From Caecitellus pseudoparvulus (Eukaryota; Protista; Bigyra: Bicosoecida), in NCBI GenBank assembly GCA_965644315.1, contig CBFFRQ010000021.1, forward strand, positions 1 through 26,026: DNA of 26,026 nucleotides, read 5' to 3'. Positions within the stretch are counted from its first letter, which is position 1, and each line of letters begins with the position of its first letter. Shown here one piece after another: positions 1,443 through 26,026 of this stretch. A program made the position numbers and the translations under genes. The notes beneath the pieces are model-generated. The model had not been told where the DNA came from. It was given only the letters and a program-made list of their open reading frames with translations, and searched no databases.

Positions 1443-1454
1443 GTACGGGAGCCG

Positions 1455-2582: not shown

Positions 2583-5500
2583 TCAAATCAACTCCTTCAA
2601 GCTCTCAAACTTGGTGGCTTCCTGTCTCACGCTGTCTGGGATCCTGCGGTGCCCCGTCAGGCCCAACAGCTCACGCACGATGTCTGTGTGGCCATTGCGA
2701 CATGCCCATCGGAAGCCAGCCTCAGGTCCACCCCAAGCCGCCGCGTGCACATCCACCTCCCGCGCCCCAGTCAGGCCCAGCAGCTCACGCACGATGTCTG
2801 TTTCGCCAAGGCGGCATGCCCATCGGAAGCCAGCCTCAGGCCCATCCTCATCCGCCGCATGCACATCCACCTCCCGCGCCCCGCTCAGGCCCAGCAGCTC
2901 ACGCACGATGTCTGTGCGGCCATTGCCGCATGCCTCTCGGAAGCCAGCCTCAGGTCCATCCTCATCCGCCGCATGCACATTCACCTCCCGCGCCCCGCTC
3001 AGGCCCAGCAGCTCACGCACGATGTCTGTGCGGCCATCGCGGCATGCCCATCGGAAGGCGGCCTCAGGTCCATCCTCATCCGCCGCATGCACATTCACCT
3101 CCCGCGCCCCGCTCAGGCCCAACAGCTCACGCACGATGTCTGTGCGGCCATCGCGGCATGCGTACCGGAAGGCGGCCTCAGGTCCATCCCCATCCGCCGC
3201 ATGCACATCCACCTCCCGCGCCCCGCTCAGGCCCAACAGCTCACGCACGATGTCTGTGCGGCCATCGCGGCATGCCCATCGGAAGGCGGCCTCAGGTCCA
3301 TCCTCATCCGCCGCATGCACATTCACCTCCCGCGCCCCGCTCAGGCCCAACAGCTCACGCACGATGTCTGCGTGGCCATTGCCGCATGCCCATCGGAAGG
3401 CAGCCTCAGGTCCATCCCCATCCGCCGCATGCACATCCACTGCCCGCGCCCCGCTCAGGCCCAACAGCTCACGCACGATGCCTGTGCGGCCCCAGCGGCA
3501 TGCACCTCGGAAGGCAGCCTCAGGTCCAGCCCCATCCGTCGCATGCACATCCACCTCCCGCGCCCCAGTGAGACCCAGCAGCTCACGCACGATGTCTATG
3601 TGTCCACTGTAGCATGCACCTCGGAAGCCAGCCTCAGGCCCATGATCATTCGCCGCATGCACATTCACCTCCCGCGCCCCAGTCAGGCCCAGCAGCTCAC
3701 GCACGATAGCTGTTTGTCCATTGGCGCATGCCTCTCGGAAGCCAGCCTCAGGTCCATCCCCATCCGCCGCATGCACATCCACTGCCCGCGCCCCGCTCAG
3801 GCCCAACAGCTCACGCACGATGCCTGTGCGGCCCCAGCGGCATGCCGCTCGGAAGCCAGCCTCAGGTCCATGCTCATCCGCCGCATGCACATCCACTTCC
3901 CGCGCCCCAGTCAGGCCCAGCAGCTCACGCACAATGTCTGTGTGGCCACTGGCACACGCGGCTCGGAAGGCAGCCTCAGGACCATCACTTCTGCGAAATG
4001 GCGCCACCTGAACAAATCCCGCCGCGTGCACGTCCACTGCCTCATCCCCCGTCAAAGACAGCAGCTCACGCACCCTGGCAAGTTTGCCATCCTTGCATGC
4101 TGTAATATACGCTGTCGTGTTCCCCTCACTGAATCTCTTCGGCTCAGGGGCTGGCTCCGACTCTGTTGCCGGTGCTGCCGCAGCTTCAGCTGTCTCCGCC
4201 TGCGCCTGAGCTGCCGCACCAGCTGCCTGCTCCTCATCAAGCACACCCCGCACAGCACTTTCCACACCTTCCAGATGACCCACTCCACCTCCACTTCCCT
4301 CACACGCCATCGCATATGTACCCATGCAGCAACCACTCCCTCCACTCTCCAACACCTCCAACGCGCTCAGCAGTCCATGCTCACCACCTTCACCGCTGCC
4401 CACGAAGTTTGAGTCAACCCCCGAACCGCCACCCAACGCACCACTCTCCATACCAAGCACCTCACACAAAACACACAACACACCACCACCATCACCTCTG
4501 CCACCATCAAGGCGAACTGTGCCCCACACACCGCCACATGCACTCAACACCACCTCACACCCACCCCCATCCAGTGCGCCCACCAGATCACCCACACTGC
4601 CACTCCCCACACCCACCACCACAAAGCTCCCCACACCCACACCACTCAGACTCACTCCACATGCCTCCGCCACAGCACACACACCCAGCACCCTCACAGC
4701 CACGCGCTGCTTCACCTCCAGCCCAACATCGCCCCACGCTTCATCCTCCAGGAACACCCTCAACGGCCACCCCGCCTCACACAGTACCTGCACCGTCACC
4801 ATGCTCCTCTGACCGAGTGGCTCATCAGCCCTGCCTGCTGTACTGCTGTGTGCTAGTGCTGCTCTGCGTGGAGTCTGCGCCATGCGCGGCAGTCCATGGG
4901 CGATGCGAGCAGCTTCGCCACGGTTCACAGCGCCAACACACGTGACAAGCGCTGTCGCACCCGCCTCCACACTCCCTGCCCACTGCTCCGCATCACCAGC
5001 TCCACCCACATCCTCATCCACGATCTCAACCCGTCCACTGTACACACTCACACCCTTGCCGTTCAGACACTCCAAGCCGCTCGACAAGTCCAAGCCATCC
5101 ACAGCCTTCACCCTCCGACCACTCATCACCGGCGCACACCCCAACAGCCCACGCAGCTCCTTCACTGCACTCGCTGCACTCTCCAAGTGCTCCGCAGCAC
5201 TCTCACTCGCCAGATCGCCTGCCGCCTCGCCTCGCAGCCAACCAGCCTGCTGACGCATGCCAGCCAGAGCCGCCTCCGCCGCTGCGTCGCCACCGGCATC
5301 ATGCGTGACTGGGCCACCTTCACCAGCTACATCCACCTCCACCCCCTCAAAGCCTTGCCACCATCGTGTCAGGTCAGCCAGCGCACCCTCCACGTTCACA
5401 CCGGCCCGCACACTGCCCCAAGCACCCACAATGGCGCCCCACAGTGCGCCACCCTCCGGCACTGCATCAACACCCACACCAGACACCGCTGTATGAAGCA

Positions 5501-5828
5501 CATCCACCGCGCAGAAGCACCGAAACGACAGATACTGCAGCGCAGCACACACGCCACCTCGCTCACGCTGCCCCGCCAACAGCCCAGCCTGCTCCAACAG
5601 CGCACTCCCCGCATCACGCAGTGCAGCCTCCAGCTCCACCAGGCTCATGGCCGATGGGGCGTCGCCTGCAGCAGGCGCTTCGCCACGCCCAATGGCTGCC
5701 AGTCCTCGCAGTGCTGGGCCGTGGTCCATGACGTTGCCCGGCAAGCACTTCACCTTGCCCAAGCATGCCGCTACCACCTCAGCCTGCGCGTCATCGATGC
5801 CTACAGTGGGCGCTGCAGCGCCCTCCAT
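2583..5828 (-). CDS. Ankyrin-repeat protein copy 1 (about 1081 aa from ATG 5828; ORF extends to 5957); cap plus 12 repeats
   Basis: Uninterrupted ORF. 38-aa repeat VDVHAADxxGPEA(A/G)FRxACxxGxTDIVRELLGL(T/S)GARE aligns with ankyrin DVNA.D..G.TPLH.A...GH.EIV..LL..GA. Confidence 0.9.
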   Translation of the reverse strand: MEGAAAPTVGIDDAQAEVVAACLGKVKCLPGNVMDHGPALRGLAAIGRGEAPAAGDAPSAMSLVELEAALRDAGSALLEQAGLLAGQRERGGVCAALQYLSFRCFCAVDVLHTAVSGVGVDAVPEGGALWGAIVGAWGSVRAGVNVEGALADLTRWWQGFEGVEVDVAGEGGPVTHDAGGDAAAEAALAGMRQQAGWLRGEAAGDLASESAAEHLESAASAVKELRGLLGCAPVMSGRRVKAVDGLDLSSGLECLNGKGVSVYSGRVEIVDEDVGGAGDAEQWAGSVEAGATALVTCVGAVNRGEAARIAHGLPRMAQTPRRAALAHSSTAGRADEPLGQRSMVTVQVLCEAGWPLRVFLEDEAWGDVGLEVKQRVAVRVLGVCAVAEACGVSLSGVGVGSFVVVGVGSGSVGDLVGALDGGGCEVVLSACGGVWGTVRLDGGRGDGGGVLCVLCEVLGMESGALGGGSGVDSNFVGSGEGGEHGLLSALEVLESGGSGCCMGTYAMACEGSGGGVGHLEGVESAVRGVLDEEQAAGAAAQAQAETAEAAAAPATESEPAPEPKRFSEGNTTAYITACKDGKLARVRELLSLTGDEAVDVHAAGFVQVAPFRRSDGPEAAFRAACASGHTDIVRELLGLTGAREVDVHAADEHGPEAGFRAACRWGRTGIVRELLGLSGARAVDVHAADGDGPEAGFREACANGQTAIVRELLGLTGAREVNVHAANDHGPEAGFRGACYSGHIDIVRELLGLTGAREVDVHATDGAGPEAAFRGACRWGRTGIVRELLGLSGARAVDVHAADGDGPEAAFRWACGNGHADIVRELLGLSGAREVNVHAADEDGPEAAFRWACRDGRTDIVRELLGLSGAREVDVHAADGDGPEAAFRYACRDGRTDIVRELLGLSGAREVNVHAADEDGPEAAFRWACRDGRTDIVRELLGLSGAREVNVHAADEDGPEAGFREACGNGRTDIVRELLGLSGAREVDVHAADEDGPEAGFRWACRLGETDIVRELLGLTGAREVDVHAAAWGGPEAGFRWACRNGHTDIVRELLGLTGHRRIPDSVRQEATKFESLKELI
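2650..4110 (-). repeat. 114-bp coding tandem repeat array, copy 1 (12 units plus degenerate first unit)
   Basis: cagctcacgcacgatgtctg recurs at a 114-bp period. Confidence 0.95.
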
Positions 5829-6569
5829 GGCTTGTCCTGTTGCTGCTGCCTGAGGCGTCGGGGAGGGGCAGGGCGCTGTGTGCTGTGGTGTGTGTGCGAC
5901 ACGCTTTGTCGCAAGTGCTGGCGAAAGCGAGGCACCACGCCCACGCCCACGCACCATGGCAATGGACGGCAGGGGGTCTAGTCAGGCGTAGCTGTGCTGT
6001 AAAGCCGACTCCTGCGGGGTGATGGCAGTGGACGCGTGTGTTGGTGCTGTGGGAAGGCGCTGTCGCAGCTTACGTGTGCGAGGGAGCAACTTCCGCACTT
6101 GCACCAGTGCAAGCTCACCTGTCGCGGCCAGAAGTGGAGACAAGGCAGAAGACACGCTGATGTCCGGATGCCCAATGAACCCACAAGTAAGAGTGGGAAA
6201 TGGATGAGGAGCAATTTGGTGCAAGACATGTGAAGGGTGTCCCGCTCCGCTCGATGCGGTGCGCATCATCTCAGCAAGAGAGGTGCGGAACTAGCTATCT
6301 GGACATCCGCAAGATCCCCGTTCGAGTGCTGACGGGAGCTGCGTCAAGGCGCGGAGTGCGATGGAGGGGGTGGACTCGTGCGCTCCGAGCAGCGCTGTCC
6401 ATACACGGCACTGGGCGGGGCAAAACCGCCCGCTTTGCTGTGCCCGCACTTTTGTGTGTAAGGGTTGCGGCCTTGTCGTGTCTGGCAGTGTGGCTCCGTC
6501 ACCCTTCCTTGCCCACACGATATTCATTGGCGTGGTGGCGACTGCTCTGTCCCAAGCCACAACAAAGCC
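5829..6569. promoter_or_regulatory. Putative bidirectional promoter/5' UTR region between divergent ankyrin and SEC12-like starts (also 281-1017, 10480-11217, 21546-22286)
   Basis: Position between head-to-head ATGs only; no motif identified. Confidence 0.35.
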
Positions 6570-6994: not shown

Positions 6995-7006
6995 GTACGG
7001 GAGCCG

Positions 7007-7961
7007 GCAGCCAGGTGGTTGGGCGCCGTCCTGAACACCGTGGCAGTGGCGAGTGTGGGGAGCTGCCCCCCACCGCCTGGCGTGGCGGCGTGGCTGGCTG
7101 GGGATGAGCGCCTGTTCGCCTTGGCCCGGGCAGCCTGTGTGCAGCTGGCGGACGGGGCGCTGAGCAGGGAGCAGGGCACGGCCCTGGCGCCGGTGCTGCT
7201 GTTCACGGCGGTGGGGCTGTACGCCACCACGCCGCCCAGCTCCCGCAACACCATCCCGCCCCACCTCGCCGAGCGCACTGCTCGCTTGGCCGGCAAGTGC
7301 ACCCTGCTCGTGGGTGGCATGGAGGTGGTGGGCGGCAAGGCGGTGCAGCGAGACAGCCCGCCCTCCACACACACCGCCCACAACGATGGAGGCAGTGCGC
7401 GGGACCCGCTGTTCTGGCTGCTGCAGCGCCTCAGCAACACGGCAGTGTACAAGGGCGGACCGGCGGCCACCACGGCGCTGAACGTGTTCGGGGCCATGGC
7501 TGGGCACTTGCCTCAGGCAGACCTGCAGCGGTACGTGGTGCCGGTGGCGCGGGCAGTGTTCCGCACTGTGCAGGCAGCAGAGCACGTGACCAGCGACCCC
7601 CGCCTGGCCGACGCGCCATCCTGGTCAGAGGAAGGCACAGCAAGCGTCCGCTGCAGTGGAAGCAGGGGCCTTGGCGTCAGAGGTCATGGAGGGCGTGCTG
7701 GCTGCCATGGGCGCAGATGTGTTCTTGACGGCGTACAACGGCGAGCGGCGGGCCAGGGCGGCGGCGAAGGAGTGGCGGGCGAGGCAGGTGGCGCAGGAGG
7801 CGGTGGTGAACCCGGCAGCAGCTGCAGGGTGTCGGAGGGGGAGGGCGCACGTGAAGAAGCGTCACGTGGCGAAGCGTGTGGACATGGTGAAGGTGCTGCG
7901 AGGCGGTGGTGGGAAGGGCAGGAAGTGGGGAAGGAGGAGTGGGAGGCGTGAGAGGGATTGA
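7007..7961 (+). pseudogene. UTP20: UTP20-like C-terminal fragment, copy B, frameshifted
   Basis: Homologous to 1455-2432. A +1 insertion near 7631 splits it over ORFs 7019-7951 and 7656-7961. Confidence 0.7.
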
Positions 7962-8127
7962 TGTGTGGAGGGGTGGAGGGGTGTGCAATGCAGGTGTGGG
8001 AGCGGGGGGGCGTTGAAGTGGTGGTGAGGTGTGCTGTGTGGTGTGTGGAGGAGGGACGTGTATGCTGGTATGGAGGTGTGGCGGGTGTGCTGGCCTGACG
8101 TGGGGACCAGGTTTGCCACATGGTGCA

Positions 8128-10479
8128 TTAGTCTGTGCTTGGGGCCTGGGGCTGAATCAAGTCTTTCAAGCCCTCAAACTTGGCTGCTTGCTGCCGCACA
8201 GTGTCTGGGATCCTGCGATGCCCAGTGAGGCCCAGCAGCTCACGCACGATGTCTATACGGCCATTGATACATGCGCCTCGGAAGGCGGCCTCGGGTCCAC
8301 GCCTATCCGCCGCGTGCACATCCACCTCCCGCGCCCCAGTGAGGCCCAGCAGCTCACGCACGATGTCTGTGCAGCCCCAGCGGCATGCTCCTCGGAAGCC
8401 AGCCTCAGGTCCAGACCCATCCGCCGCATGCACATCCACCTCCCGCGCCCCAGTCAGGCCCAACAGCTCACGCACGATGTCTGTACGGCCATGGAGGCAT
8501 GCGCCTCGGAAGCCAGCCTCAGGTCCAGACCCATCCGCCGCATGCACATCCACCTCCCGCGCCCCAGTCAGGCCCAACAGCTCACGCACGATGTCTGTGC
8601 GGCCCCTGGCGCATGCCACTCGGAAAGCGGCCTCAGGGCCCTGTCTGCAAACCCCTGGCCGGATCTCAACACTTCCTTCCTCATGCACATCCACTGCCTC
8701 ATCCCCCGTCAATGCCAGCAGCTCGCGCACTCTCGCAAGCTCCCCATCTTTGCACGCTTCCACAAACGCTGTGGTGTTCTCCTCACTGAACTTCACTTGC
8801 TTGGCAGCAATTTCCAACTCTGTAGCCGGTACAGCCTCTGCGTCAGCTGTCTCCGCCTGACCCGCCGCACCAGCTGCCTGCTCCTCATCAAGCATACATC
8901 GCACAGCACTTTCCACACCTTCCAGATGACCCAAGTCACCCCCACTTCCTTCACACGCCATCGCATATGCACCCATGCAGCAACCACTCCTTCCCCGCGC
9001 CAACACCTCCAACGCACTCGACAGTGCATGCTCATCACCTTCACTGCTCCCCACAAAGCTCGACCCAACGCCCGATCCGCCACCCATCGCACCACCGTCC
9101 ACATCAAGCACCTCACGCAGCACACTCAACACACCACCACCCTCACCACTGCCGCCATCCCAGTGACCAGTGCCCCACACTCTGCCACATGCACTCAACA
9201 CCACCTCGCACCCACCCCCATCCAGTGCCCCCACCAGATCACCCACACTGCCACTCCCCACACCCACCATCACGAAGCTCCCTACACCCACACCACTCAG
9301 ACTCACTCCACACGCCTCCGCCACAGCACACACACCCAGCACCCTCACAGCCACCCGCTGCTTCACATCCAGCCCAACATCGCCCCACGCTTCATCCTCC
9401 AGGAACACTCTTAACGGCCAACCCGCCTCACACTGCACCTGCACTGTGACACTGCTCCTCTCGCCAACCGGCTCATCAGCCCTGCCTGCTGTGCTGCTGT
9501 GTGCCAGTGCTGCTCTGCGTGGAGTCTGCGCCATCCGCGGCAGGCCATGGGCGATGCGAGTCGCTTCGCCACGCTTCACAGCGCCAACACTCGTGGCAAG
9601 CGCCCTCGCACCCGCCTCCACCTTTGCTGTCCACTGCTCCACATCCCCAGCTCCACCCACATCCTCATCCACGATCTCGCTCCGCCCACTGTACACACTC
9701 ACATCCTTGCCGTTCAGGCACTCCAAGCCGCCCGACAAGTCCAAGCCACCCACAGCCCTCACCTTCCGACCACTCATCACCGGCGCACACCCCAGCAGCC
9801 CACGCAGCTCCCCCACTGCACTCGCAGCACACTCCAAGTGCTCCGCAGCACTCTCACTCCTCAGCTCCCCTGCCGCCTCGCCTCGCAGCCACTCAGCCTG
9901 CTGACGCATGCCAGCCAGAGCCGCATCCGCCGCTGCCTCGCCACCGGCATCATGTGTGAGTGGGCCACCCTCACCAGCCACATCCACATCCGCCCCCTCG
10001 AAGCCTTGCCACCATCGCGTCAGATCTGCCAGCGCACCCTCCACGTTCACACCGGCCCGCACACTGCCCCAAGCACCCACAATGGCGCCCCACAGTGCGT
10101 CGCCCACCGGCACTGCATCAACACTCACGCCAGATGCCGCCTGATGCAGCACATCCACCGCGCAGAAGCACCGAAACGACAGGTACTGCAGCGCAGCACA
10201 CACACCACCTCGCTCATGCTGCCCCACCAGCAGCCCAGCCTGCTCCAACAGCGCACTCCCCGCATCACGCAGTGCAGCCTCCAGCTCCACCAGGCTCATG
10301 GCCGCTGGGGCGTCGCCTGTAACAGGCGCTTCGCCACGCCCAATGGCTGCAAGTCCTCTCAGTGCTGGGCCGTGGTCCATGACGCTGCCCGGCAAGCACT
10401 TCATCTTGCGCAAGCATGCCGCCACCGCCTCAGCCTGTATGTCGTCGACGCCTGCAGTGGGCGCTGCACTACCGTCCAT
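8128..10479 (-). CDS. Ankyrin-repeat protein copy 2 (about 783 aa from ATG 10479; ORF extends to 10608); cap plus 4 repeats
   Basis: Uninterrupted ORF paralogous to copy 1, with a short C-terminal extension QPQAPSTD. Confidence 0.9.
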   Translation of the reverse strand: MDGSAAPTAGVDDIQAEAVAACLRKMKCLPGSVMDHGPALRGLAAIGRGEAPVTGDAPAAMSLVELEAALRDAGSALLEQAGLLVGQHERGGVCAALQYLSFRCFCAVDVLHQAASGVSVDAVPVGDALWGAIVGAWGSVRAGVNVEGALADLTRWWQGFEGADVDVAGEGGPLTHDAGGEAAADAALAGMRQQAEWLRGEAAGELRSESAAEHLECAASAVGELRGLLGCAPVMSGRKVRAVGGLDLSGGLECLNGKDVSVYSGRSEIVDEDVGGAGDVEQWTAKVEAGARALATSVGAVKRGEATRIAHGLPRMAQTPRRAALAHSSTAGRADEPVGERSSVTVQVQCEAGWPLRVFLEDEAWGDVGLDVKQRVAVRVLGVCAVAEACGVSLSGVGVGSFVMVGVGSGSVGDLVGALDGGGCEVVLSACGRVWGTGHWDGGSGEGGGVLSVLREVLDVDGGAMGGGSGVGSSFVGSSEGDEHALSSALEVLARGRSGCCMGAYAMACEGSGGDLGHLEGVESAVRCMLDEEQAAGAAGQAETADAEAVPATELEIAAKQVKFSEENTTAFVEACKDGELARVRELLALTGDEAVDVHEEGSVEIRPGVCRQGPEAAFRVACARGRTDIVRELLGLTGAREVDVHAADGSGPEAGFRGACLHGRTDIVRELLGLTGAREVDVHAADGSGPEAGFRGACRWGCTDIVRELLGLTGAREVDVHAADRRGPEAAFRGACINGRIDIVRELLGLTGHRRIPDTVRQQAAKFEGLKDLIQPQAPSTD
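8221..8765 (-). repeat. 114-bp coding tandem repeat array, copy 2 (4 units plus cap)
   Basis: Same 114-bp unit. Confidence 0.93.
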
Positions 10480-11642: not shown

Positions 11643-11654
11643 GTACGGGAGCCG

Positions 11655-12703: not shown

Positions 12704-14447
12704 TCAAATCAAGTCCTTCAAGCTCTCAAACTTGGTGGCTTCCTGTCGCACGCTGTCTGGGATCCTGCGATGCCCAGTGAGGCCCAGCAGCTCACGCACG
12801 ATGTCTGTGTGGCCATTCTCGCATGCCCATCGGAAGCCGGCCTCAGGTCCACCCTCATCCGCCGCATGCACATCCACCTCCCGCGCCCCAGTGAGGCCCA
12901 ACAGCTCACGCACGATGTCTGTATAGCCATTGTGGCATGCCAGTCGGAAGCCAGCCTCAGGTCCATCCTCATCCGCCGCGTGCACATCCACCTCCCGCGC
13001 CCCAGTCAGGCCCAGCAGCTCACGCACGACATCTGTGCGGCCATTGTAGCATGCCAATCGAAAGCCAGCCTCAGGTCCAGCCCGATCCGCCACATGCACA
13101 TCCACTTCCCGCGCCCCAGTGAGATCCAGCAGCTCACGCACGATGTCTGTGTGGCCCCAGCGGCATGCCAGCCGGAAGGCGGCCTCAGGTCCATCCCCAT
13201 CCGCCGCATGCACATCCACCTCCCGCGCACCAGTGAGGCCCAACAGCTCACGCACGACATCTGTGCGGCCATTGTAGCATGCCCATCGGAAGGCGGCCTC
13301 AGGTCCACCCCAAGTCGCCGCATGCACATCGACTTCCCGCGCCCCAGTCAGGCCCAGCAGCTCACGCACGATGTCTGTATGGCCATTGTGGCATGCCAGC
13401 CGGAAGCCAGCCTCAGGTCCATCCCCATCCGCCGCATGCACATCCACCTCCCGCGCCCCGCTCAGGCCCAACAGCTCACGCACAATGTCTGTGCGGCCAT
13501 AGCGGCATGCCCATCGGAAGCCGGCCTCAGGTCCACCCTCATCCGCCGCGTGCACATCCACTTCCCGCGCCCCAGTCAGGCCCAGCAGCTCACGCACGAT
13601 GTCTGTGTGGCCATTGACGCATGCCCATCGGAAGCCAGCCTCGGGTCCATCCCCATCCGCCGCGTGCACATCCACCTCCCGCGCACCAGTGAGGCCCAGC
13701 AGCTCACGCACGACATCTGTGCGGCCCCAGCGGCATGCCTCTCGAAAGGCGGCCTCGGGTCCATCCCCATCCGCCGCATGCACATCCACCTCCCGCGCCC
13801 CAGTCAGACCCAGCAGCTCACGCACGATGTCTGTGCGGCCATCGCCGCATGCCCATCGGAAGGCAGCCTCACGGCCATTGCTGGTGCGCCCAATCAAGTC
13901 CACAACACATCCTTCCGCATGTATATTCACTGCCTCATCCCCCGTCAATGACAGCAACTCGCGCACTCTCGCAAGCTCCCCATCCTTGCACGCTTCCACA
14001 AACGCTGTGGTGCTCTCCTCGCTGAACGTCACTTGCTCGGCAGCAATCTCCGACTCTGTAGCCGGTACAGCCTCAGCTTGAGCTGTCTCCGCCTGACCTG
14101 CCGCAGCAGCTGCCTGCTCACCATCAAGCACACTCCGCACAGCACTTTCCACACCTGACAAACGCCCCACTCCACCCCCACTTCCTTCACATGCCATCGC
14201 ATATGCACCCATGCAGCAACCACTCCCTCCCCTCCCCAACACCTCCAACGCGCTCGTCAGTTCAAGCTTAACACCTTCACCGCTGCCCACGAAGCTTGAC
14301 CCAACGCTCGAGTCGCCACCCATCGCACCACCTCCCACACCAAGCACCTCACGCAGCACACCTAACACACCGCCACCCTCATCACCACAGCAGCCGCCGT
14401 CAGAGCTACCTGTGCCCCACACACCGCCACATGCACTCAACACCACC
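12704..14447 (-). pseudogene. Ankyrin-repeat gene copy 3, 3' part (cap plus 10 repeats), separated from its 5' part by the retrotransposon
   Basis: Homology to the paralogues resumes at VVLSACGGVWG. Deleting 14448-20271 rejoins it in frame with 20272-21545 (about 1005 aa). Confidence 0.9.
12771..14000 (-). repeat. 114-bp coding tandem repeat array, copy 3 (10 units plus cap)
   Basis: Same 114-bp unit. Confidence 0.93.
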
Positions 14448-14621
14448 GAGGTTGCCGGCACCCCAGCCGGCAACCATGTTTCCCGGCAGGAGGGGCGGCG
14501 GGCAGTCCCACGCTAGTGGCACAATTGTCCCCCGCCGCCCCAACGCAGAGTAGACGACGGCAGGACCGGGCATGACAAAACCAGTCATTAGCCGGCCTCG
14601 TCACTCTCTTTCCTTTTTTTT
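14448..14621 (+). repeat. Split direct repeat A1 (174 bp)
   Basis: Identical by eye to 19934-20107; ends in an oligo-T tract. Confidence 0.95.
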
Positions 14622-14625
14622 CGAG

Positions 14626-16708
14626 ATGGCATCGGATGATCCAGCTTCCAGCGACACGGAGGGCGGAAGCTGGGAGGACATCCACGACAAAATGATGTCT
14701 GTCAACTCCGCCAAGCAAGCCAAGGCGCTCATAACGGAGCAGGAGTTCGAGTACTGGCTGAAGTGGGCGGATTCTGAGGATTTTGGTAAGATGGAGGCCG
14801 CTTGGCGCCTCCGGGAGGTGCCCGAGGGATTCCGGGCAGATCGCATGCGATCCCTCATTGCGGGCAGAGCTTTCCGCCTCCCCGCTGACGGTGCCCCTCA
14901 TCGCGCAGGCGGCTCACCACGGGGGCACGGCACGAAGCGAACCCGTCCGCGCGGTGCGAGCAGTGGCACGCCCTACGGCCCGCACCTACCCCCGCGCCCG
15001 ACCCAGCCGGACGCAGTCGCAGGCGACCTCCCGCAAGATCCCGCCACAGTGCTTACGTGGTTCCTGCAGAGGGGAGCGACGGTGCCGAGCGAGGACGTCG
15101 CCGTGCAGCTGCAGTTCTACGTGGGCTTGGCAACGGAGGAGACATCGCCGTACGCCCTCTCCGCTTGGCCTCCACGGCGCTTCGCCGCATGGTGCAGACT
15201 CAACGGTATTCCCCCCGACCTCACCCCCGACGACATCGTGATGCATTTGCAGCGGGTCCTGGAGGCCGCGCTGGCGGGCGACGACGACTTTGGCGACGAC
15301 GATGCCGGCGCCCCGTTCTTTCCCGTTTTCCCGGGCACCACACCGGATGCCGCCCGGTTACAGCCCCGTGCGGCGGCCCCGGGTCACCCCCCGGCCTCCA
15401 AGAGGCACAGGGCGGCCTATAGCCCGCAGCCCCCCTCCCCCGTGGGGCGGCGGAGCCTCGCCGGCAGTCCACCCCGAAGGCGGGTCGGCTGTTTTCGGTC
15501 ACATGGGGGAGAACAGCGGTCGGTCGTCGCCAGCCGACGAGGTACTGGTCACTGTAGGCGCGCTGCGGGTCATTGGGCCGACCGCACACCCCTCGTCGGC
15601 GGTGGCCCGGGACCGCCTGTCAGCCTTGGGGGCAGTTTTCGCTGCGGGGACCACAGACGCCTTGACCACGGTGGCTGTCGAGATGGCTGAGGCTGCTGCA
15701 CGAGAGGTGCCCGCAGCAACGGGCCCAGTGCCGTCAGGTACGTTCCTGTCCCGCCAGCTCCCCCCCCACTCGCCCCGCGTGCCCGCTCCCGGCGACCCGT
15801 CCTGGCTCACAGCCCCCGGCGATGAGGTAGCCCCGCCGTCCGCGTCGGTCATGATGGACGACGCTATGGACGTAGTGACTGCTGTACGCCTGGTGCAAGG
15901 GAGGGTGGAAGTTACAGTTGACCCAACCCATCTAGTGGCAGTAACTGGGGCGGGTGCCCTGTCGGCATGCCACATGCTGGGCAACCGTGGGGGCGCTTGG
16001 TGGCTTGCTGCGATGACCAGGGACTTGCTGACGGCGCCTTCCGACGACCTCCACCGCTCCCTCCGAGCGTTCTGGTGGAAGTGGGCGTCCGAGGTGCCCG
16101 CCCTGGCAGACCAGCGGGGCCTGTGCCGAGCCATGGCGTGCGCACTCCTGATCACAATCGCAGTGCGGGCCGTGGCGCAGACCGCCGCTGCGTTGCCCGA
16201 AGGCCAGCGCAGGCGATGGGCCCAGCTGACGTGGGCCTCCTGGGTGGCCACGTTCCGCACTAACGCCACCATTGTCATGATGGCGTCGGCGACGGGGCAA
16301 GCACTGGTGGCCAGCTCGCTGGCGCGCGAGGCATGGGCGGCCGGGGCCGCCGCCACACCGATGCCAGGTGCGGGGGGCGGCCCGGCGCAAACCCCCGCTC
16401 GTGGCCCTCCCGCGGGGCTGTACCGGCAGGACGACCCGAGCACATTCGTGTGGTGCCCCGGGTGCGTCGGATCCGACCGGCGGCGCCGGTCGCTGGCATC
16501 CTGCCCACGCCTGGCCCAGCATGTGGCCCACCTGCGCCGGACCCACACAGTCGGAGGTAAGCCCGCAGAACTTACCCAGGCGCAGGCAGTGGCCATGCTG
16601 GTGCGCCAGTGGGAGCGGAAGGTGGCATCCAAGGGACGTGACTTCCAGCGGCGCATGCAGCCCCGCGCTGTCACCACGGCCATGGTGGAGGCAGCTCTCA
16701 GCCTCTAG
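14626..16708 (+). CDS. ORF1, gag-like, split by a frame change near 15430-15441
   Basis: First position in the element, ATG just after A1 (MASDDPAS...). Continues in ORF 15290-16708 with a Cys/His cluster WCPGC..C..QHVAHLRRTH. Function inferred from position only. Confidence 0.55.
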
Positions 16709-16711
16709 GAG

Positions 16712-18926
16712 GTGGGCCGGAGCGCGGTGGTGAGAGCGACCACGGGGTACCGGGCCGTGCCCGTGGAGTGGAGGGCTGCCGCCCCGCTCTCGACAGACCA
16801 CCGCGCCATGGCCGTGCTCATCGAATCAATGGTCCAGCAGCTGCATGGGGACCGTTGTTGGACTCCACCGGGGCTCTTCGAGGACATCTTGCGTGGGGGC
16901 TTGGACTGGGGCCCCCACCCCGTGGTCTCATACTGGGGTTGCCAGGAGGCCCACGCTGACGTGTGTCCCGCATGCGGCGAGACCACTTCCAGATTACGGC
17001 AGCTTGAGCGGTGCGCAGCCATGCGACTGCTCACCGTGGTCACGCTGCGCGGGTGGGACCCCGCTTGGCTGCTGTTCCGCCGCCCCCCGGCAGCGGCATC
17101 CCCGTCCTCGGCATACGTGCTGCAGCCGCACGACGAGCGGGCGGTGGCAGCGGCCTATGACGCCTTCGCGGCTGCGCGCGTGCTGCAGCCGGTCACCCCC
17201 AGCAGCTGCAGCAGCACCGAAAGATGGGGGGGCCAGCCGCTTCTGCCTTCGTTGTCACGACATGGGCCCCCCAGCCGGGCGTCAGCGACGAAGCTCTGCG
17301 ACAGTGGGCTGCTGCGAACCCAGGCGAGGCGGTGCAGGCCGCCAGCTCTTCCCGCGCGCCCGCCCGCCCGAGCCGCCTGTTCCGGGCCAAGCAGCGGGTG
17401 GTGTACGATCTGGCAGCCGTCAACCAGGCCTCAGTGAGCCCCCCATTCCACTACCCCACGCTGGAGAGCTGGGCGCTGCGCCTCCCGCCGAACTCGGACT
17501 GTGTTGTCCTGGACGTGGAAGCAGGGTACACGGCCATCCCCATCGCTCCGTCGGGCGCCGGACTGTTCACCATGCTCGCCCAGGGCAGGCCAGCCTTCCG
17601 CATGCTTCGGATGGCCTTCGGGTACAGCCCGGCCGGGGCCATTTTCTGCTTTTTTTCTGGACTTCTGGGCGCCAAGATCGAAGCGGCGTTCCCAGCAGGG
17701 CATGTGGTTGTGTACGTAGACGACGTCGGGCTTGGGGGAGCTACGTTGGGGCCACGGCCATCGATCGTGCCCAAGATAACTCAACTGTTCGAGGACGTGG
17801 GCTTCCGGGTGTCGCGCAAGAAGACGCAAGGGCCACAGCGCGTCGTTCAGTACTTGGGGATGGTGGTCAGGTGTGCCCCGTGTGGGGTGTACCTTGAGTG
17901 TCCTCAAGCCAAACGAACTCAGCTGCGGTGGCAGCTGGCCGCGGTCCTTAATCGCCTCGGCGCTTGCTCCACCATCCCCAAGCGCGTTTTCGCCGCGGTC
18001 ACAGGGCGCTTGCACGGCCTGTCGGCCGTGGTGCCCCACGCAAAACAAACGCTGTCGCTCTTGTACGACACCATGCGCACACACAAGTACCGCGTCGGCC
18101 CCCCGGCGCTCTCGTGCCTGTCCCCCCGGCGTCGCACGGGGCCCTGCGGACCCTCCTTGAGGCCCTCGGTGGGCCGTTATCGACGGGCCCGATGCGCCCG
18201 CTCTCCCCACTGTCAAGCAGGTGGCGCGCCGCCCTCTTTGGCTCGTGCGACGCGTCGGGGGAAGGCGGGCTGGGGGCAACAGTGTCGAGGTGGGCAGGGC
18301 CAGGAGAACGCACAGACTCCGCTTGGTACGCGTCCATGCGCATCCCCGGCACAGCCCCGGGCGAGGAGCTCGTGGGAGCCTCCACGATGCTGGAGCTGTA
18401 CGCAATCGCCTTGGCTATGGCAATGGCGCGGCATGTTTTTCCCGAGCCGGGGCCGCTGCTGCTATGCCTAGCTGCGGACAGCCAGGCAGCGGTGGCGCTG
18501 GCGCGACGAGGGTACAGCAAGCACAGCCGTGAACTCACGCGCGTCTGCGGGGTCCTCGAGCGGGTTTCCCGCGTTTTGGACGTCCACTTGGCGCCTCGGT
18601 GGATCCCGAGGAGCCTGAATTGGCGGGCGGACGCCCTCAGCCACCCCGAAAGGGTGGATAGCAGCACACCGGCAGCGCTCGGCCTCCCGCCAGGGCAACC
18701 AGCCGAGCTGGAGGTATCAGCAGGGGGAAGCAGCGCCGCTGAGCGGTGGCATGATGTGTCCCTAGACGTAGGGCCGTCGGGAAAGGCCGGGGCGGGCACC
18801 GCGTGGATTCACTCAGCTCAACTCTCCGTCGCCCTGCACAGACACACTCTGGATAAGGAAGCAGACCTTCTGGCAGATGATCAGGGCCATCCCCGCGTCC
18901 CCGATCAGCAGGATTCACCAACATAG
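16712..18926 (+). CDS. pol: Pol: DIRS-type reverse transcriptase plus RNase H, with frame changes near 17200 and 18104
   Basis: RT motifs KQRVVYDLAAVN, LDVEAGYTAIPI, MAFGYSPA, YVDD, GFRVSRKKT, YLGMVV. RNase H D-E-D-D residues in CDAS, LELYAI, ADSQAAV, NWRADALS. Start uncertain (GTG 16712 or ATG 16808). Confidence 0.9.
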
Positions 18927-19776
18927 GCTGGCAAAGGGGACGGTGGTCAAGTACGTTCGCGCGGTTGCTGGCCTGATCAGGGCCGCTCCAGCACCCCGGG
19001 ACAGGGCGCGGACCATGGTGGGCATCTTAACGGGCGGCGTGGCCGCAGGCAGATGGGCCCCCCATCGGGCGAAGCAGATCCTGGCGCAATGGGTCGGTGG
19101 TTTTAGGTATCTGGGCCTGCCAATCCCGTCGCTAGCCCCGCTGGGGCTCACAGTCGGCAGCATCTGCCGGGCAATCCGCCGGCTCCACCGAGGGAGAGGG
19201 GAGCAACACCGCCGCCCTATCAGCAAAGAACAAGTCATGGAGGCCATGAAGCGGGCATGGGACGGGCCACACCTCGGGAGGCATGCCCCAACTGCCGCCG
19301 CAGCTATCTACATCGGCTTTCATGGCATGTGCAGGCCGGGAGAGCTCCGGGGCCTGCGATGGGAGGAGTTGCACTTCGGGCGGGCGGGCCCCCTGCAGTG
19401 GGTGGAGGCCAGGGTCACGGATAAAACGCACCTGAGTGCAAACCGCCACATCCAGGTGGTGCGCCAGGCCGAGTGGGCGGGGGCCTTCGACCGCCTCCGG
19501 GAGCAGGCCCGGGACAAGCGGGGAAGCCTGCTCCCAAGGTGGGCGTGGCTCAGCCTGCAAGGCATCCTGAAGGCTGTAGCGGGCGTGTCCTTGGCCCACC
19601 TGAGACCCGGGGGCAATATGTTCTGGACAGGCCGGGCCCCCGACGTCTTGGTGGAGCACGCGGCGGGCTGGGCGGCTGGCTCCCCCACCCGGGCACGATA
19701 CTACACCCAGGGGGGGGGGGAGGGGGCGAGGCTGTGGCACGAGGCCATGACACCCAGGGGAGGAAGCAAGCATTGA
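18877..19776 (+). CDS. Tyrosine recombinase (YR), 299 aa, overlapping the pol 3' end
   Basis: Catalytic pattern GFHGMCRPGEL (R), DKT (K), AHLRPGG (R), AGW (W), RARYY (Y). Confidence 0.88.
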   Translation: MIRAIPASPISRIHQHRLAKGTVVKYVRAVAGLIRAAPAPRDRARTMVGILTGGVAAGRWAPHRAKQILAQWVGGFRYLGLPIPSLAPLGLTVGSICRAIRRLHRGRGEQHRRPISKEQVMEAMKRAWDGPHLGRHAPTAAAAIYIGFHGMCRPGELRGLRWEELHFGRAGPLQWVEARVTDKTHLSANRHIQVVRQAEWAGAFDRLREQARDKRGSLLPRWAWLSLQGILKAVAGVSLAHLRPGGNMFWTGRAPDVLVEHAAGWAAGSPTRARYYTQGGGEGARLWHEAMTPRGGSKH

Positions 19777-19781
19777 AAAGT

Positions 19782-19930
19782 ATTGGCGGGTGCCGCAAGG
19801 AGGCGTCCCCTCCCCCAAGAGATGCAGCGAGCCCTGGTGGCCGCTGGCATAGAGGGGGGAGGGGACGGCCTCGAGGCGGGCCCAGTTCAATGCATTTCGA
19901 TTGCCACGCACAACGCACCAACACGAGGGA
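19782..19930 (+). repeat. Split direct repeat B1 (149 bp)
   Basis: Identical by eye to 20120-20268. Confidence 0.95.
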
Positions 19931-19933
19931 ACC

Positions 19934-20107
19934 GAGGTTGCCGGCACCCCAGCCGGCAACCATGTTTCCCGGCAGGAGGGGCGGCGGGCAGTCCCACGCT
20001 AGTGGCACAATTGTCCCCCGCCGCCCCAACGCAGAGTAGACGACGGCAGGACCGGGCATGACAAAACCAGTCATTAGCCGGCCTCGTCACTCTCTTTCCT
20101 TTTTTTT
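19934..20107 (+). repeat. Split direct repeat A2
   Basis: Copy of 14448-14621. Confidence 0.95.
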
Positions 20108-20119
20108 TTCTTTTTCTCG

Positions 20120-20268
20120 ATTGGCGGGTGCCGCAAGGAGGCGTCCCCTCCCCCAAGAGATGCAGCGAGCCCTGGTGGCCGCTGGCATAGAGGGGGGAGG
20201 GGACGGCCTCGAGGCGGGCCCAGTTCAATGCATTTCGATTGCCACGCACAACGCACCAACACGAGGGA
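20120..20268 (+). repeat. Split direct repeat B2
   Basis: Copy of 19782-19930; followed by ACC and then host sequence. Confidence 0.95.
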
Positions 20269-20271
20269 ACC

Positions 20272-21545
20272 TCACACCCACCCCCATCCAGTGCCCCCAC
20301 CAGATCACCCACACTGCCACTCCCCACACCCACCACCACAAAGCTCCCTACACCCACACCACCCAGACCCACCCCACACGCCTCCGCCACAGCACACACA
20401 TCCAGCACCCTCACAGCCACGCGCTGCTTCACCTCCAGGCCGACATCGCCCCAAGCTTCATCCTCCAGGAACACTCTTAACGGCCACCCCGCCTCACACT
20501 GCACCTGCACCGTCACACTGCTCCTCTCACCAACCGGCTCATCAGCCCTGCCAGCTCCACAAATGTGTGCCATAGCGACTTTGCGTGGAGTCTGTGCCAT
20601 CCGCGGTAGTCCATGGGCGATGCGAGCTGCTTCGCCACGCTTCACAGCGCCAACACTCGTAGCAAGCGCTGTCGCACCTGCCTCCACACTTGCTGCCCAC
20701 TGCTCCACATCACAAGCTCCACCAACATCCTCATCCACGATCTCGCTCCGTCCACTGTACACACTCACATCCTTGCCGTTCAGGCACTCCAAGCCGCCCG
20801 ACAAGTCCAAGCCACACACAGCCTTCACCCTCCGACCACTCATCACCAGCGCACACCCCAACAGCCCACGCAGCTCCTCCACTGCGCTCGCTGCACACTC
20901 CAAGTGCTTCGCAGCACTTTCACTCCTCAGCTCGCCTGCCGCCTCGCCTCGCAGCCACTCAGCCTGCAGCCGCATGCCAGCCAGAGCCGCATCCGCCGCC
21001 GCCTCGCCACCAGCATCATGCGTGACAGGGCTAACCTCACCAACTACAGCCACATCTGCCACCTCGAAGCCTTGCCACCATCGCGTCAGATCAGCCAGTG
21101 CACCCTCCACGTTCACACCGCTCCGTACATTGCCCCAAGCACCCACAATGGCGCCCCACAGTGCGTCGCCCTCCGGCACTGCATCGGCACTCACACCCGA
21201 CACCGCCTGATGCAGCACATCCACCGCGGTAAAGCACCGGAACGACAGGTACTGCAGCGCAGCACACACACCACCTCGCTCACGCTGCCCCGCCAACAGC
21301 CCAGCCTGCTCCAACAGCGCACTCCCCGCATCACGCAGTGCAGCCTCCAGCTCCACCAGGCTCATGGCCGATGGGGCGTCGCCTGCAGCAGGCGCTTCGC
21401 CACGCCCAATGGCTGCCAGTCCTCGCAGTGCTGGGCCGTGGTCCATGACACTGCCCGGCAAGCACTTCATCTTGCGCAAGCATGCCGCCACAACCTCCGC
21501 CTGTGTGTCGTCAAGACCTGCAGTGGGCGCTGCACTGCCGTCCAT
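20272..21545 (-). pseudogene. Ankyrin-repeat gene copy 3, 5' part (N-terminal region up to ...GGGCE)
   Basis: ORF 19887-21674 matches the paralogues until the insertion, then reads into element repeats B2/A2. Confidence 0.9.
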
Positions 21546-22711: not shown

Positions 22712-22723
22712 GTACGGGAGCCG

Positions 22724-23690
22724 GCAGCCAGGTGGCTGGGCGCCGTCCTGAACACCGTGGCAGTGGTGAGCGTGGGGAGCTGCCCCCTGCCGCCTGGCGT
22801 GGCGGCGTGGCTGGCTGGGGATGAGCGCCACTTCGCCCTGGCCCGGGCAGCCTGTGTGCAGCTGGCGGACGGGGCACTGAGCAGGGAGCAGGGCACGGCT
22901 CTGGCGCCGGTGCTGCTGTTCACGGTGGTGGGGCTGTACGCCACGACGCCGCCCAGCTCCCGCAACACCATCCCGCCCCACCTCGCCCAGCGCACTGCTC
23001 GCTTGGCCGGCAAGTGCACCCTGCTCGTGGGTGGCGTGGAGGTGGTGGGCGGCAAGGCGGTGCAGCGTGACAGCCCGCCCTCCACACACACCGCCCACGA
23101 CGACGACGGCGGTGCGCGGGACCCGCTGTTCTGGCTGCTGCAGCGCCTCAGCAACACGGCAGTGCAGCAGGGTGGGCCGGCGGCCACCACGGCGCTGAAC
23201 GTGTTCGGTGCCATGGCTGGGCAGGTGCCGCAGGCAGACCTGCAGCGCTACGAGGTGCCGGTGGCGCGGGCAGTGTTCCGCACTGTGCAGGCGGCAGAGC
23301 ACGTGGCCAGTGACCCCCGCCTGGCACCGACGCGCCATCTTGGTCAGAGCAAGCACAGCAGGCGGCTGCTGCAGCAGAGGCAGGCGCCTTGGCGTGGGAG
23401 GTCATGGAGGGTGTGCAGGGTGCCATGGGCGCAGATGTGTTCCTGACGGCGTACAACGGCGAGCGGCGGGCCAGGGCGGCGGCGAAGGAGCGGCGGGCGA
23501 AGCAGGTGGTGCAGTAGGCGGTGGTGAACCCGGCAGCAGCTGCCGCACGCCCGAGTCGGAAGTCACAGGCGAAGAATCGCCACGTGGCGATGCGCATGGA
23601 CAAGCTGAAGGTGGTGCGTAGGCGGTGGTGGGAAGGGCTGGAAGCGGGTGTGGGAGGCGTTGGTGCGGTGCGGAGGGGAGTGCAGTGAAG
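22724..23690 (+). pseudogene. UTP20: UTP20-like C-terminal fragment, copy D, frameshift plus stop
   Basis: +2 insertion near 23325 and TAG at 23515-23517 relative to copy A. Confidence 0.7.
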
Positions 23691-23859
23691 GTGAGGGGGC
23701 GTGGGGTGCGTGGGAATGGTGATGAGGTGTGATGCGGTGTGGTGTGTGCGGTGGAATGTGGTGCGGTATGGGCAGAGGTGGAGGTGGGGCAGGTGTGCTG
23801 GTCTTAGGTGCGTGTCAGGTTTGTCGAATGGTGCATTGGTCTGTGCTTGGTGCATGGGA

Positions 23860-26026
23860 TCAAATCAACTCCTTCAAGCTCTCAAACTTGGTGGCTTCCT
23901 GCCGCACACTGTCTGGGATCTTGCGATCACCAGTCAGGCCCAACAGCTCACGCACGATATCTGTGTGGCCATTGCCGCATGCCACTCGGAAGGCGGCCTC
24001 AGGTCCACCCCGAGCCGCCGCATGCACATCCACCTCCCGCGCCCCAGTCAGGCCCAGCAGCATACGCACGATGTCTGTGTGGCCATTGACGCATGCCCCT
24101 CGGAAGCCAGCCTCAGGTCCAGCCCCATCCGCCGCATGCACATCCACCTCCCGCGCCCCGCTCAGGCCCAGCAGCTCACGCACGATGTCTGTGTGGCCCT
24201 TGGTGCATGCCCATCGGAAGGCAGCCTCAGGCCCATACCCATCCGCCGCGTGCACATCCACCTCCCGCGCCCCAGTGAGGCCCAGCAGCTCACGCACGAT
24301 GTCCGTGCGGCCCCAGCGGCATGCCACTCGGAAGGCGGCCTCAGGTCCACGCTCATCTGCCGCGTGCACATCCACCTCCCGCGCCCCAGTCAGGCCCAAC
24401 AGCTCACGCACGATGTCTGTGCGGCCCCTGGCGCATGCCACTCGGAAAGCGGCCTCAGGGCCCTTTCTATAGAACCTAAGCCTCACCTCAACTCTTCCTT
24501 CCACATGCACATCCACTGCCTCATCCCCCGTCAATGACAGCAACTCGCGCACTCTCGCAAGCTCCCCATCCTCGCACGCTGCTACAAACGCTGTGGTGTT
24601 CTCCTCGCTGAACTTCACTTGCTCGGCAGCAACCTCCGACTCTGTAGCCGGTACAGCCTCTGCGTCAGCTGTCTCCGCCTGCCCTGCCGCATCAGCTGCA
24701 TGCTCACCATCAAGCACACCCCGCACAGCACTTTCCACACCCTCCAGACGTCCCACTCCACCCCCACTTCCTTCACATGCCATGGCATATGCACCCATGC
24801 AGCAACCACTCCCTCCCCGCCCCAACACCTCCAACGCGCTCGACAGTGCACGCTCATCACCTTCGCCGCTGCCCACAAAGCTCGACACTACGCCCGATCC
24901 GCCACCCAACGCACCACCTCCTACACCAAGCACCTGACACAGCACACCCAACACACCATCACCCTCACCACCACGGCAGCCGCCATCAGAGCTACCTGTG
25001 CCCCACACACCGCCACATGCACTCAACACCACCTCACACCCACCCCCATCCAGTGCGCCCACCAGATCACCCACACTGCCACTCCCCACACCCACCACCA
25101 CAAAGCTCCCCACACCCATACCACTCACATCCACCCCACATGCCTCCGCCACAGCACACACACCCAGTACCCGCACAGCCACGCGCTGCTTCACATCCAG
25201 CCCAACATCGCCCCACGCTTCATCCTCCAGGAACGCCCTCAGCGGCCACCCCGCCTCACACTGCACCTGCACTGTGACACTGCTCCTCTCACCACTTGGC
25301 TCATCAGCTCGGCCACCAATGACTCCATGTGCGAGTGCTGCTCTGCGTGGTGTCTGCGCCATCCGCGGTAGTCCATGCGCGATGCGAGTCGCTTCGCCAC
25401 GCTTCACAGCGCCAACACTCGTGGCAAGCGCCCTCGCACCCGCCTCCACACTCCCTGCCCACTGCCCCACATCCACAGCTCCACCCACATCCTCATCCAC
25501 GATCTCAACCCGCCCACTGTACACACTCACACCCTTGCCGTTCAGGCACTCCAAGCCGCCCGACAAGTCCAACCCGCCCACAGCCTTCACCTTCCGACCA
25601 CTCATCACCGGCGCACACCCCAACAGCCCACGCAGCTCCTCCACTGCGCTCGCTGCACACTCCAGTTGCTCCGCAGCTCTCTCACTCCTCAGCTCACCTG
25701 CCGCCTCGCCTCGCAGCCACTCAGCCTGCTGCCGCATGCCAGCTAGAGCCGCATCCATCGCTGCCTCGCCACCGGCATCATGTGTGACGGGCCCACCCCC
25801 ACCAGCCACATCTACATCGGCCACCTCAAAGCCTTGCCACCATCGCGTCAGGTCAGCCAGCGCACCCTCCACGTTCACACCGCTCCGTACACTGCCCCAA
25901 GCACCCACAATGGCGCCCCACAGTGCTTCGCCCTCCGGCACTGCATCAACACTCACACCAGATGCCGCTTGATGAAGCACATCCACCGCGCAGAAGCACC
26001 GAAATGACAGGTACTGCAGCGCAGCA
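23860..26026 (-). CDS. Ankyrin-repeat protein copy 4 (5' end beyond the window); cap plus 5 repeats
   Basis: Open frame paralogous to copies 1-3, running to the right edge. Confidence 0.88.
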   Translation of the reverse strand, partial: AALQYLSFRCFCAVDVLHQAASGVSVDAVPEGEALWGAIVGAWGSVRSGVNVEGALADLTRWWQGFEVADVDVAGGGGPVTHDAGGEAAMDAALAGMRQQAEWLRGEAAGELRSERAAEQLECAASAVEELRGLLGCAPVMSGRKVKAVGGLDLSGGLECLNGKGVSVYSGRVEIVDEDVGGAVDVGQWAGSVEAGARALATSVGAVKRGEATRIAHGLPRMAQTPRRAALAHGVIGGRADEPSGERSSVTVQVQCEAGWPLRAFLEDEAWGDVGLDVKQRVAVRVLGVCAVAEACGVDVSGMGVGSFVVVGVGSGSVGDLVGALDGGGCEVVLSACGGVWGTGSSDGGCRGGEGDGVLGVLCQVLGVGGGALGGGSGVVSSFVGSGEGDERALSSALEVLGRGGSGCCMGAYAMACEGSGGGVGRLEGVESAVRGVLDGEHAADAAGQAETADAEAVPATESEVAAEQVKFSEENTTAFVAACEDGELARVRELLSLTGDEAVDVHVEGRVEVRLRFYRKGPEAAFRVACARGRTDIVRELLGLTGAREVDVHAADERGPEAAFRVACRWGRTDIVRELLGLTGAREVDVHAADGYGPEAAFRWACTKGHTDIVRELLGLSGAREVDVHAADGAGPEAGFRGACVNGHTDIVRMLLGLTGAREVDVHAAARGGPEAAFRVACGNGHTDIVRELLGLTGDRKIPDSVRQEATKFESLKELI
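23927..24590 (-). repeat. 114-bp coding tandem repeat array, copy 4 (5 units plus cap)
   Basis: Same 114-bp unit. Confidence 0.93.

Follow-up and report, generated by a model that had tools for sequence, protein, structure and literature searches.

A lineage-specific family of candidate immune receptors combining a helical domain, a predicted pseudokinase and hypervariable ankyrin repeats in Caecitellus pseudoparvulus

Fungal NLRs such as HNWD and Pa_3_8560 consist of an N-terminal output domain, a central module and near-identical C-terminal repeats that vary in number, are shuffled and, in the case of ankyrin, show positive selection at five sites of the hairpin and inner helix (PMC4986451). 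Among stramenopiles, the ROCO-LRR and NB-ARC-TPR proteins of Ectocarpus are candidate immune receptors whose genes undergo rapid birth and death and whose repeats diversify and are shuffled (PMC3341825), and in MLKL a pseudokinase serves as the switch that controls a helical executor (PMC13519141). The protein-based antiviral defence of heterotrophic protists is largely unknown (PMC10945749). Here, we describe a family of tandem ankyrin-repeat genes in contig CBFFRQ010000021.1 of the bicosoecid Caecitellus pseudoparvulus (assembly GCA_965644315.1), a stretch of 26,026 nucleotides, hereafter the window, that is one whole 26-kb contig of a eukaryotic assembly of 30.6 Mb in 215 contigs. The encoded proteins join a helical domain and a predicted pseudokinase to ankyrin arrays whose binding face is under diversifying selection, and they are strong candidates for a protist immune receptor of a kind not described before, whose immune, antiviral or prey-directed function we infer.

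A parallel with the fungal NLRs had been drawn in the original prediction, which was made from the letters of the window alone, and is borne out by the near-identical repeats, the shuffling and the selected ankyrin sites (PMC4986451). As far as can be judged from sequence, the arrays have the properties of hypervariable (HiC-type) repeats, namely internal identity above 85%, variation in repeat number and positively selected positions on the binding face. Unlike the fungal proteins, the family has no NACHT or NB-ARC domain, a pseudokinase at its centre, an N-terminus unlike known NLR effectors and a unit of 38 amino acids (aa). The lack of an NTPase domain, also predicted, agrees with Pfam scans that returned no NACHT or NB-ARC match, and membership of the NLR/STAND class was rejected because no central P-loop NTPase was found in Pfam, the region folds as a kinase and the genome's few NACHT matches lie elsewhere. 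In the Ectocarpus families one exon encodes each repeat and a GTPase or NB-ARC domain forms the core, whereas the genes described here are single open frames that combine ankyrin repeats with a pseudokinase. The evolutionary pattern is thus known, and what appear to be new are the helical domain and the way in which the domains are combined: literature searches, of incomplete coverage, yielded no description of this family, and the combination occurs in no database searched.

Selection on the ankyrin binding face

All 31 ankyrin repeats of the original prediction were recovered exactly (12, 4, 10 and 5 per array), on the minus strand, as 38-aa units with a 114-bp period at 2651-3986, 8221-8637, 12773-13878 and 23930-24459. 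The four arrays stand, but they do not amount to four whole genes: the third lies in the 3' part of a gene interrupted by an Ngaro retrotransposon, gene 4 is cut by the contig end and a fifth member lies at 1-280 (Table 1). Pfam Ank_2 scores above cut-off in all four genes (E 1e-7 to 4e-54) and the best PDB matches are ANK-N5C, Kidins220 and DARPins, which places the arrays among ankyrin repeats. Identity between repeats in the window is 85-88%, and the expected constant scaffold with few variable sites is evident from an entropy of 1.7-2.8 bits at unit positions 8, 9, 17, 20, 21 and 23, against mostly 0-0.6 elsewhere, and from pairwise proportions of nonsynonymous and synonymous differences (pN/pS) of 0.447/0.167 in the variable set and 0.035/0.187 in the scaffold. 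Among 147 repeats from 28 genes, 128 different seven-site combinations were counted.

Codon site models, proposed earlier as a check, were fitted with our own implementation on IQ-TREE trees to 28 of the about 80 family genes, a sample biased to close paralogues. They gave diversifying selection on the binding face, with a ratio of nonsynonymous to synonymous rates (dN/dS, omega) of 3.9-5.3 at positions 8, 9, 17, 20 and 21. For 134 distinct repeats, the likelihood-ratio test statistic (LRT) of M2a against M1a was 231.8, with omega 3.9 and a posterior of 1.0 at these five positions; M8 against M7 gave 266 and M8 against M8a 207. The 27 canonical repeats of the window alone gave an LRT of 70.5 and omega 5.3, and a tree built without the variable codons returned the same five sites. 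The G-x site (position 23), also listed as variable, was selected in the window set but not in the 134-repeat set. Site by site, dN exceeded dS at position 8 (p 0.0013), 9 (p 1e-13), 20 (p 0.0017) and 21 (p 0.0003), and position 17 had the highest dN, but with p 0.07.

A neutral origin, in which an unstable tandem array is homogenised by conversion and mutational hot spots mimic selection, would draw some support from the setting of the arrays, which are tandem duplications in transposon-collecting regions (of 20 Ngaro copies that were scored, 7 fall inside a family gene or no more than 1.3 kb from one; binomial p about 1e-6 to 1e-8). The signal was not reproduced by neutral simulations (n = 12) on trees shuffled in 1, 4 or 33 blocks to represent recombination, in which the LRT was at most 4.7. 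Synonymous rates at positions 8, 9, 20 and 21 were 0.03-1.2 against a scaffold median of 1.0 and were therefore not raised at four of the five variable sites; since dN also exceeds dS, the variation reflects selection and not a mutation hot spot. Together with frames that stay open while co-duplicated passengers decay (see below), this leaves the neutral explanation largely refuted, with next to no probability. Decayed scraps of UTP20, one of these passengers, give omega 0.34 in the model fitted to the N-terminal module, so the neutral baseline in this GC-rich DNA lies below 1 and the values of 4-5 are conservative; a claim of purifying selection from the module's own omega of 0.44 was dropped on the same comparison.

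Aligned to the solved ANK-N5C-317, unit positions 8, 9, 17, 20 and 21 correspond to ankyrin positions 2, 3, 10, 13 and 14; the mapping is by alignment to solved ankyrins, and the two structure models made here cover the N-terminal module. Classic DARPins randomise positions 2, 3, 5, 13, 14 and 33. The ANK-N5C library randomises 2, 3, 5, 10, 13 and 33 on the hairpin and helix 1 (PMC4308713), so that 2, 3, 10 and 13 are among its randomised sites, in keeping with the predicted match to engineered libraries. The likeness to these libraries, which comprises a fixed scaffold, N- and C-caps and variation at hairpin and helix-1 positions 2, 3, 10, 13 and 14 (PMC4308713, PMC8683736), is best read as analogy and not as family membership: the family is natural, its units have 38 aa, positions 5 and 33 are fixed and a 540-aa N-terminal module is attached. 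The label of DARPin-like binders accordingly holds for the variation of the binding face but not for the proteins as a whole, which are no bare binders. Natural selection has here converged on the ankyrin positions chosen for randomisation in protein engineering. The hairpin loop of the first repeat is usually longer by 9 aa (3969-4037 in the window, and in paralogues); it differs from paralogue to paralogue and is positively selected (LRT 74.6, 21 paralogues), and the 38-aa scaffold with this extended loop may be of use in binder design. Members on contigs C19 and C72 have long loops in internal repeats.

Multi-base codon swaps had been suggested as a source of the variation, and 60-79% of pairwise codon differences at positions 17, 20 and 21 are indeed multi-base. 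No such mechanism is needed: the codons seen at each variable site all connect by single-base steps into one network, and the multi-base differences are therefore explained by stepwise change and recombination. Diversification resembling that by diversity-generating retroelements, or by cassette conversion, was rejected because dS is not raised at positions 8, 9, 20 and 21, the codons are linked by single steps and the nearby reverse transcriptase belongs to the dispersed Ngaro element. Repeats are reshuffled within and between genes. Their number per gene ranges from 1 to 13; all 15 of the 15 repeat pairs that differ by at most 2 nt lie within one gene, including a four-repeat block duplication, and the nearest neighbour of a repeat sits in another gene for 86 of 141. 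Linkage decays within 10 nt (r2 ~0.012 beyond), and one codon pair at positions 20-21 recurs in 14 genes.

The module ahead of the repeats

Each gene opens with a helical domain of ~220 aa followed by a kinase fold, a part of the proteins that the original prediction had missed. The 540 aa ahead of the repeats have no Pfam match and no PDB sequence match, and an AlphaFold2 (AF2) model of them (predicted local distance difference test, pLDDT, 69.7; predicted template-modelling score, pTM, 0.68) contains a helical region and then a two-lobed domain, for which the top 50 structural matches are all protein kinases (Z 10-11.8 over ~200-225 residues, root-mean-square deviation, rmsd, 3.6-4.8). These include the TYK2 pseudokinase (JH2; Z 11.8, 215 residues, rmsd 3.6), ALK (11.7), IRAK4, IRAK1 and rat MLKL (11.3); Foldseek, with weak E-values, and an Atlas feature search (0.93) also point to a kinase, and identity to real kinases is about 10%. 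With motif positions placed by us on the predicted strands and helices, 13 of 13 aligned members lack the beta3 lysine (VAIK), the catalytic HRD aspartate and the DFG aspartate, and the alphaC glutamate alone is retained. Under the definition of a pseudokinase as a kinase fold in which the VAIK Lys, HRD Asp or DFG Asp is lost (PMC13519141), the modelled central domain is a pseudokinase, predicted to be catalytically dead.

The helical domain, also modelled alone, has no match in Pfam, among PDB sequences, in Foldseek searches of PDB and viral libraries or in the Atlas; its best structural Z, 6.5, covers a two-helix hairpin only, with no MLKL, HeLo or RPW8 chain among the matches. It is acidic (14 K+R vs 30 D+E) and without a strong membrane segment (best 19-aa hydropathy 1.5), and hydropathy and inspection by eye made no signal peptide or membrane anchor evident.

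As in MLKL and its plant and fungal relatives, an N-terminal helical domain precedes a TKL/TK-like pseudokinase, but the kinase structural scores are tied, so no special kinship to MLKL follows; moreover, the helical domain matches no four-helix bundle, and MLKL has neither a fused variable sensor nor an 80-gene expansion. Membership of the MLKL group was rejected, as no Pfam or structural match to the 4HB/HeLo-like bundle was obtained. In RNase L and integrin-linked kinase, too, a single chain combines ankyrin repeats with a pseudokinase, which RNase L uses as sensor and switch for an antiviral output. They differ from the family in their opposite domain order, in being single conserved genes and in having no hypervariable repeats, and kinship with RNase L was rejected on domain order and on Pfam scans that found no RNase (KEN) domain. 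By analogy, the family may nevertheless work like MLKL or RNase L.

The module need not be a switch. In a library of restriction factors or adaptors, the array would bind foreign proteins and the helical-pseudokinase part would be a rigid handle without any output of its own that recruits host machinery, such as an active kinase or ubiquitin ligases; this accounts equally well for the selection and the expansion and suits both a pseudokinase without any nucleotide-binding motif and a helical domain without membrane-attack features. Pfam scans, however, gave no match to F-box, SOCS, BTB or RING domains, and the conserved order of output, switch and sensor, with swapping of sensors, fits a receptor better, so that we consider an adaptor library plausible but rather doubtful.

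In the N-terminal module, omega 3.2 fits about 10% of the codons (LRT 233). In gene 1 the sites fitting positive selection are residues 150, 186, 288 and 373-374 and a cluster at 483-492 (window 4480-4510), which falls just after the degenerate DFG, in the activation-segment region, where the alignment is uncertain. Decoy and guard logic is known from ZED1/RKS1, and these sites, the cluster included, would suit a pseudokinase that serves as bait for pathogen effectors targeting kinases, with the array reading the bait or the effector. The segment at 483-492 is Gly-rich, modelled with low confidence and hard to align, and a domain with ~10% identity to real kinases would be a poor mimic; a decoy is distinctly unlikely.

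Maintenance and proposed function of the family

A genome-wide count, also called for earlier, places the helical-domain profile at 82 sites, corresponding to about 80 genes, a number that may include haplotypes (C21, C22, C79, C142, C158 and C196 could be fragments or haplotypes of a single array), and a stop inside the helical domain occurs in one of ~78 matches. The reading frames of the family are preserved while co-duplicated passengers decay: frameshifts or stops break 0 of 27 copies of the N-terminal module, which is the longer target, and 14 of 22 UTP20 scraps. The loci were picked among good matches, a choice with a slight bias towards intact copies. A search of 1.84 billion representatives returned 19 matching clusters, all with E below 1e-30 and none weaker, and so no detectable relatives outside this lineage; the clusters looked up derive from marine metagenome and Logan assemblies, and one such contig carries a housekeeping gene with 99% identity to the copy in the C. 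pseudoparvulus genome, so most of the 19 probably represent the same species or close kin. In EukProt, the closest match of this housekeeping gene (49% identity) is in a transcriptome with the prefix GECG, probably that of Halocafeteria; this and the Cafeteria-like Ngaro elements (PMC8547959) make a bicosoecid host likely. The ZHEN20-1 marine metagenomes contain the same or a very close species (housekeeping gene 99%) and offer independent alleles for a study of polymorphism. One sequencing run guessed to be RNA (low depth, labelled as another organism) covers 14 of 16 gene bins and 0 of 14 flanking bins, whereas DNA runs cover all; as a hint of expression this is suggestive only, no family-holding run being on record as RNA.

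We favour, at about an even chance, a lineage-specific family of one-piece intracellular non-self receptors composed of sensor, pseudokinase switch and output domain. Point mutations on the binding face would be favoured by selection, and exchange between 114-bp units, through gene conversion and unequal crossing-over, would combine the favoured variants into new arrays, as in fungal NLR repeats. In the cytosol, where the proteins probably reside given that no signal peptide or anchor is evident, the array would bind fast-evolving foreign proteins, most likely of giant viruses, virophages or ingested bacteria. Binding would move the pseudokinase, which, standing where NLRs carry their NTPase, would act as a conformational switch without catalytic activity, and this would free or oligomerise the helical domain, which would then start a defence output, either cell death or signalling. 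The pairing of a constant module with differing tails (ankyrin, Sel1, other) speaks for such a receptor: the module is also found attached to nine Sel1 repeats or to coiled tails, or at the C-terminus of a 1608-aa protein (P0006, P0008, P0016, L022:5474-9625). So does the sequence of output, switch and repeats, which parallels that of NLRs (PMC4986451). A 1383-aa Sel1 gene lies tail-to-tail with one family member (L022).

Several points weigh against it. Ligand, output and function are deduced, and the expression data are not firm; the viruses of the host are likewise presumed; some members have only one or two repeats; and with no match to the MLKL four-helix bundle, HeLo or RPW8 and no membrane features, a pore-forming output is unsupported. 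Recognition of something other than pathogens, in prey handling, strain allorecognition or the suppression of selfish elements (retrotransposons, virophages), is suggested by the role of fungal hypervariable repeats in allorecognition (PMC4986451) and by Cafeteria burkhardae ankyrin genes enriched in stationary phase (PMC7852580). Active Ngaro elements in the genome would provide a target for the last of these, and the apparent lack of a signal peptide or membrane anchor makes recognition of prey or mates at the surface unlikely. Cell fusion is not known for such flagellates, and we hold a non-pathogen role to be unlikely.

Taken further, the non-self receptor reading would place the family next to NLR and ROCO proteins as a third type of intracellular immune receptor. 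Its switch would be a pseudokinase instead of an NTPase and would control a new domain for cell death or signalling, and the heterotrophic host would have a recombining set of ~80 sensors directed against giant viruses or other invaders; we advance this tentatively, as somewhat less than probable. The family supplies concrete, testable candidates with a clear arms-race signature and, should the host be a flagellate similar to Cafeteria, they could be studied in existing cultured systems of virus and host.

Window layout, passengers and the Ngaro element

The window is a tandem DNA duplication with a unit of ~5.5 kb and 87-93% identity between units (Table 1). The open frame of gene 1 continues upstream to an ATG at 5957. 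A TTG-started open reading frame of 589 aa in gene 3 is an artefact, as the frame reads out of the transposon.

Table 1. Features of the 26,026-nucleotide window
Feature	Positions	Strand	Evidence or remarks
Gene 0, fifth family member, N-terminal start, truncated by contig end	1..280	-	C21:2-238 matches helical-domain profile
Passenger, SEC12/PREB-like 5' scrap	1018..1456	+	Weak PDB match to PREB, E 0.52, over Gly-rich KTGI motif
Passenger, UTP20 3' scrap, decaying	1442..2432	+	PF23099, E 0.009
Gene 1, 1080 aa from probable start Met	2583..5825	-	Start agrees with homolog P0001
Gene 1, ankyrin array, 12 repeats and C-cap	2583..4037	-	114-bp period, Pfam
Gene 1, N-cap repeat and first repeat with 9-aa longer loop	3897..4127	-	
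Gene 1, predicted pseudokinase domain (kinase fold)	4287..5159	-	Structure match; lacks beta3 Lys, HRD Asp and DFG Asp, retains alphaC Glu
Gene 1, helical domain, ~220 aa, 9 helices	5133..5804	-	AF2 pLDDT 85.8, modelled alone
Gene 2, intact, 4 ankyrin repeats (8128-8694)	8128..10476	-	
Gene 3, 3' half: pseudokinase end and 10 ankyrin repeats (12704-13930)	12704..14447	-	
Ngaro-type tyrosine-recombinase retrotransposon, 5,821 bp, A1-ORFs-B1-A2-B2	14448..20268	+	Split repeats, junctions; inside gene 3
Gene 3, 5' half: helical domain and most of pseudokinase	20269..21542	-	No in-frame stop
Gene 4, 5 ankyrin repeats (23860-24516), 5' end truncated by contig end	23860..26026	-	

The two passenger scraps are fused near 1442-1456, with ~15 bp of overlap, and the chimera recurs in each duplication unit; further copies of the SEC12/PREB-like scrap lie at about 6570, 11218 and 22287, and those of the UTP20 scrap end at about 7950, 12617 and 23692. 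Elsewhere in the genome, which holds about 35 copies of the UTP20 scrap, two copies match the SEC12/PREB-like part only. Older dispersed passengers hold the UTP20 scrap alone, which is suggestive of spread in two amplification steps. The intact UTP20 gene is likely a frame of 4257 aa on contig C43 (scrap match at C43:618933-619847), tail-to-tail with a family member; UTP20 has about 2,800 aa, so this frame is longer.

The Ngaro element broke gene 3 at 14447/20269, with a 3-base core common to element and target. Its insertion is recent and its family very young, with 17 near-full copies in the genome that are 99-100% identical. The A (174 bp) and B (149 bp) split repeats form identical pairs. 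Its coding part matches reverse transcriptase (PF00078, E 7e-8) and integrase (phrog_1, E 9e-7). The Ngaro elements of Cafeteria burkhardae have the structure A1-ORFs-B1A2B2 with split direct repeats and are likewise ~6 kb long, with reverse transcriptase, RNase H-like and tyrosine-recombinase frames and 10-25 copies per genome (PMC8547959); the element here differs in being unassigned to type and enriched in ankyrin family arrays. Besides the scored copies, two more lie by family genes at contig ends (contigs concerned: C22, C71, C72, C79, C142, C158). Sequence-specific targeting was not supported, as the flanks at differing sites have only a 2-3 base core in common; tolerance of insertions in a redundant family or a regional preference could both explain the enrichment, and on present evidence the element is not part of the diversification mechanism.

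Neighbouring genes on C72 (L013:2190-5579, 7843-9900) have identical ankyrin arrays and identical UTP20 scraps and are either a very recent duplication or an assembly duplicate. The N-terminal modules show a strong G/T skew on their coding strands, with a plus-strand GC skew of about -0.5, and the transposon differs from them in this respect.

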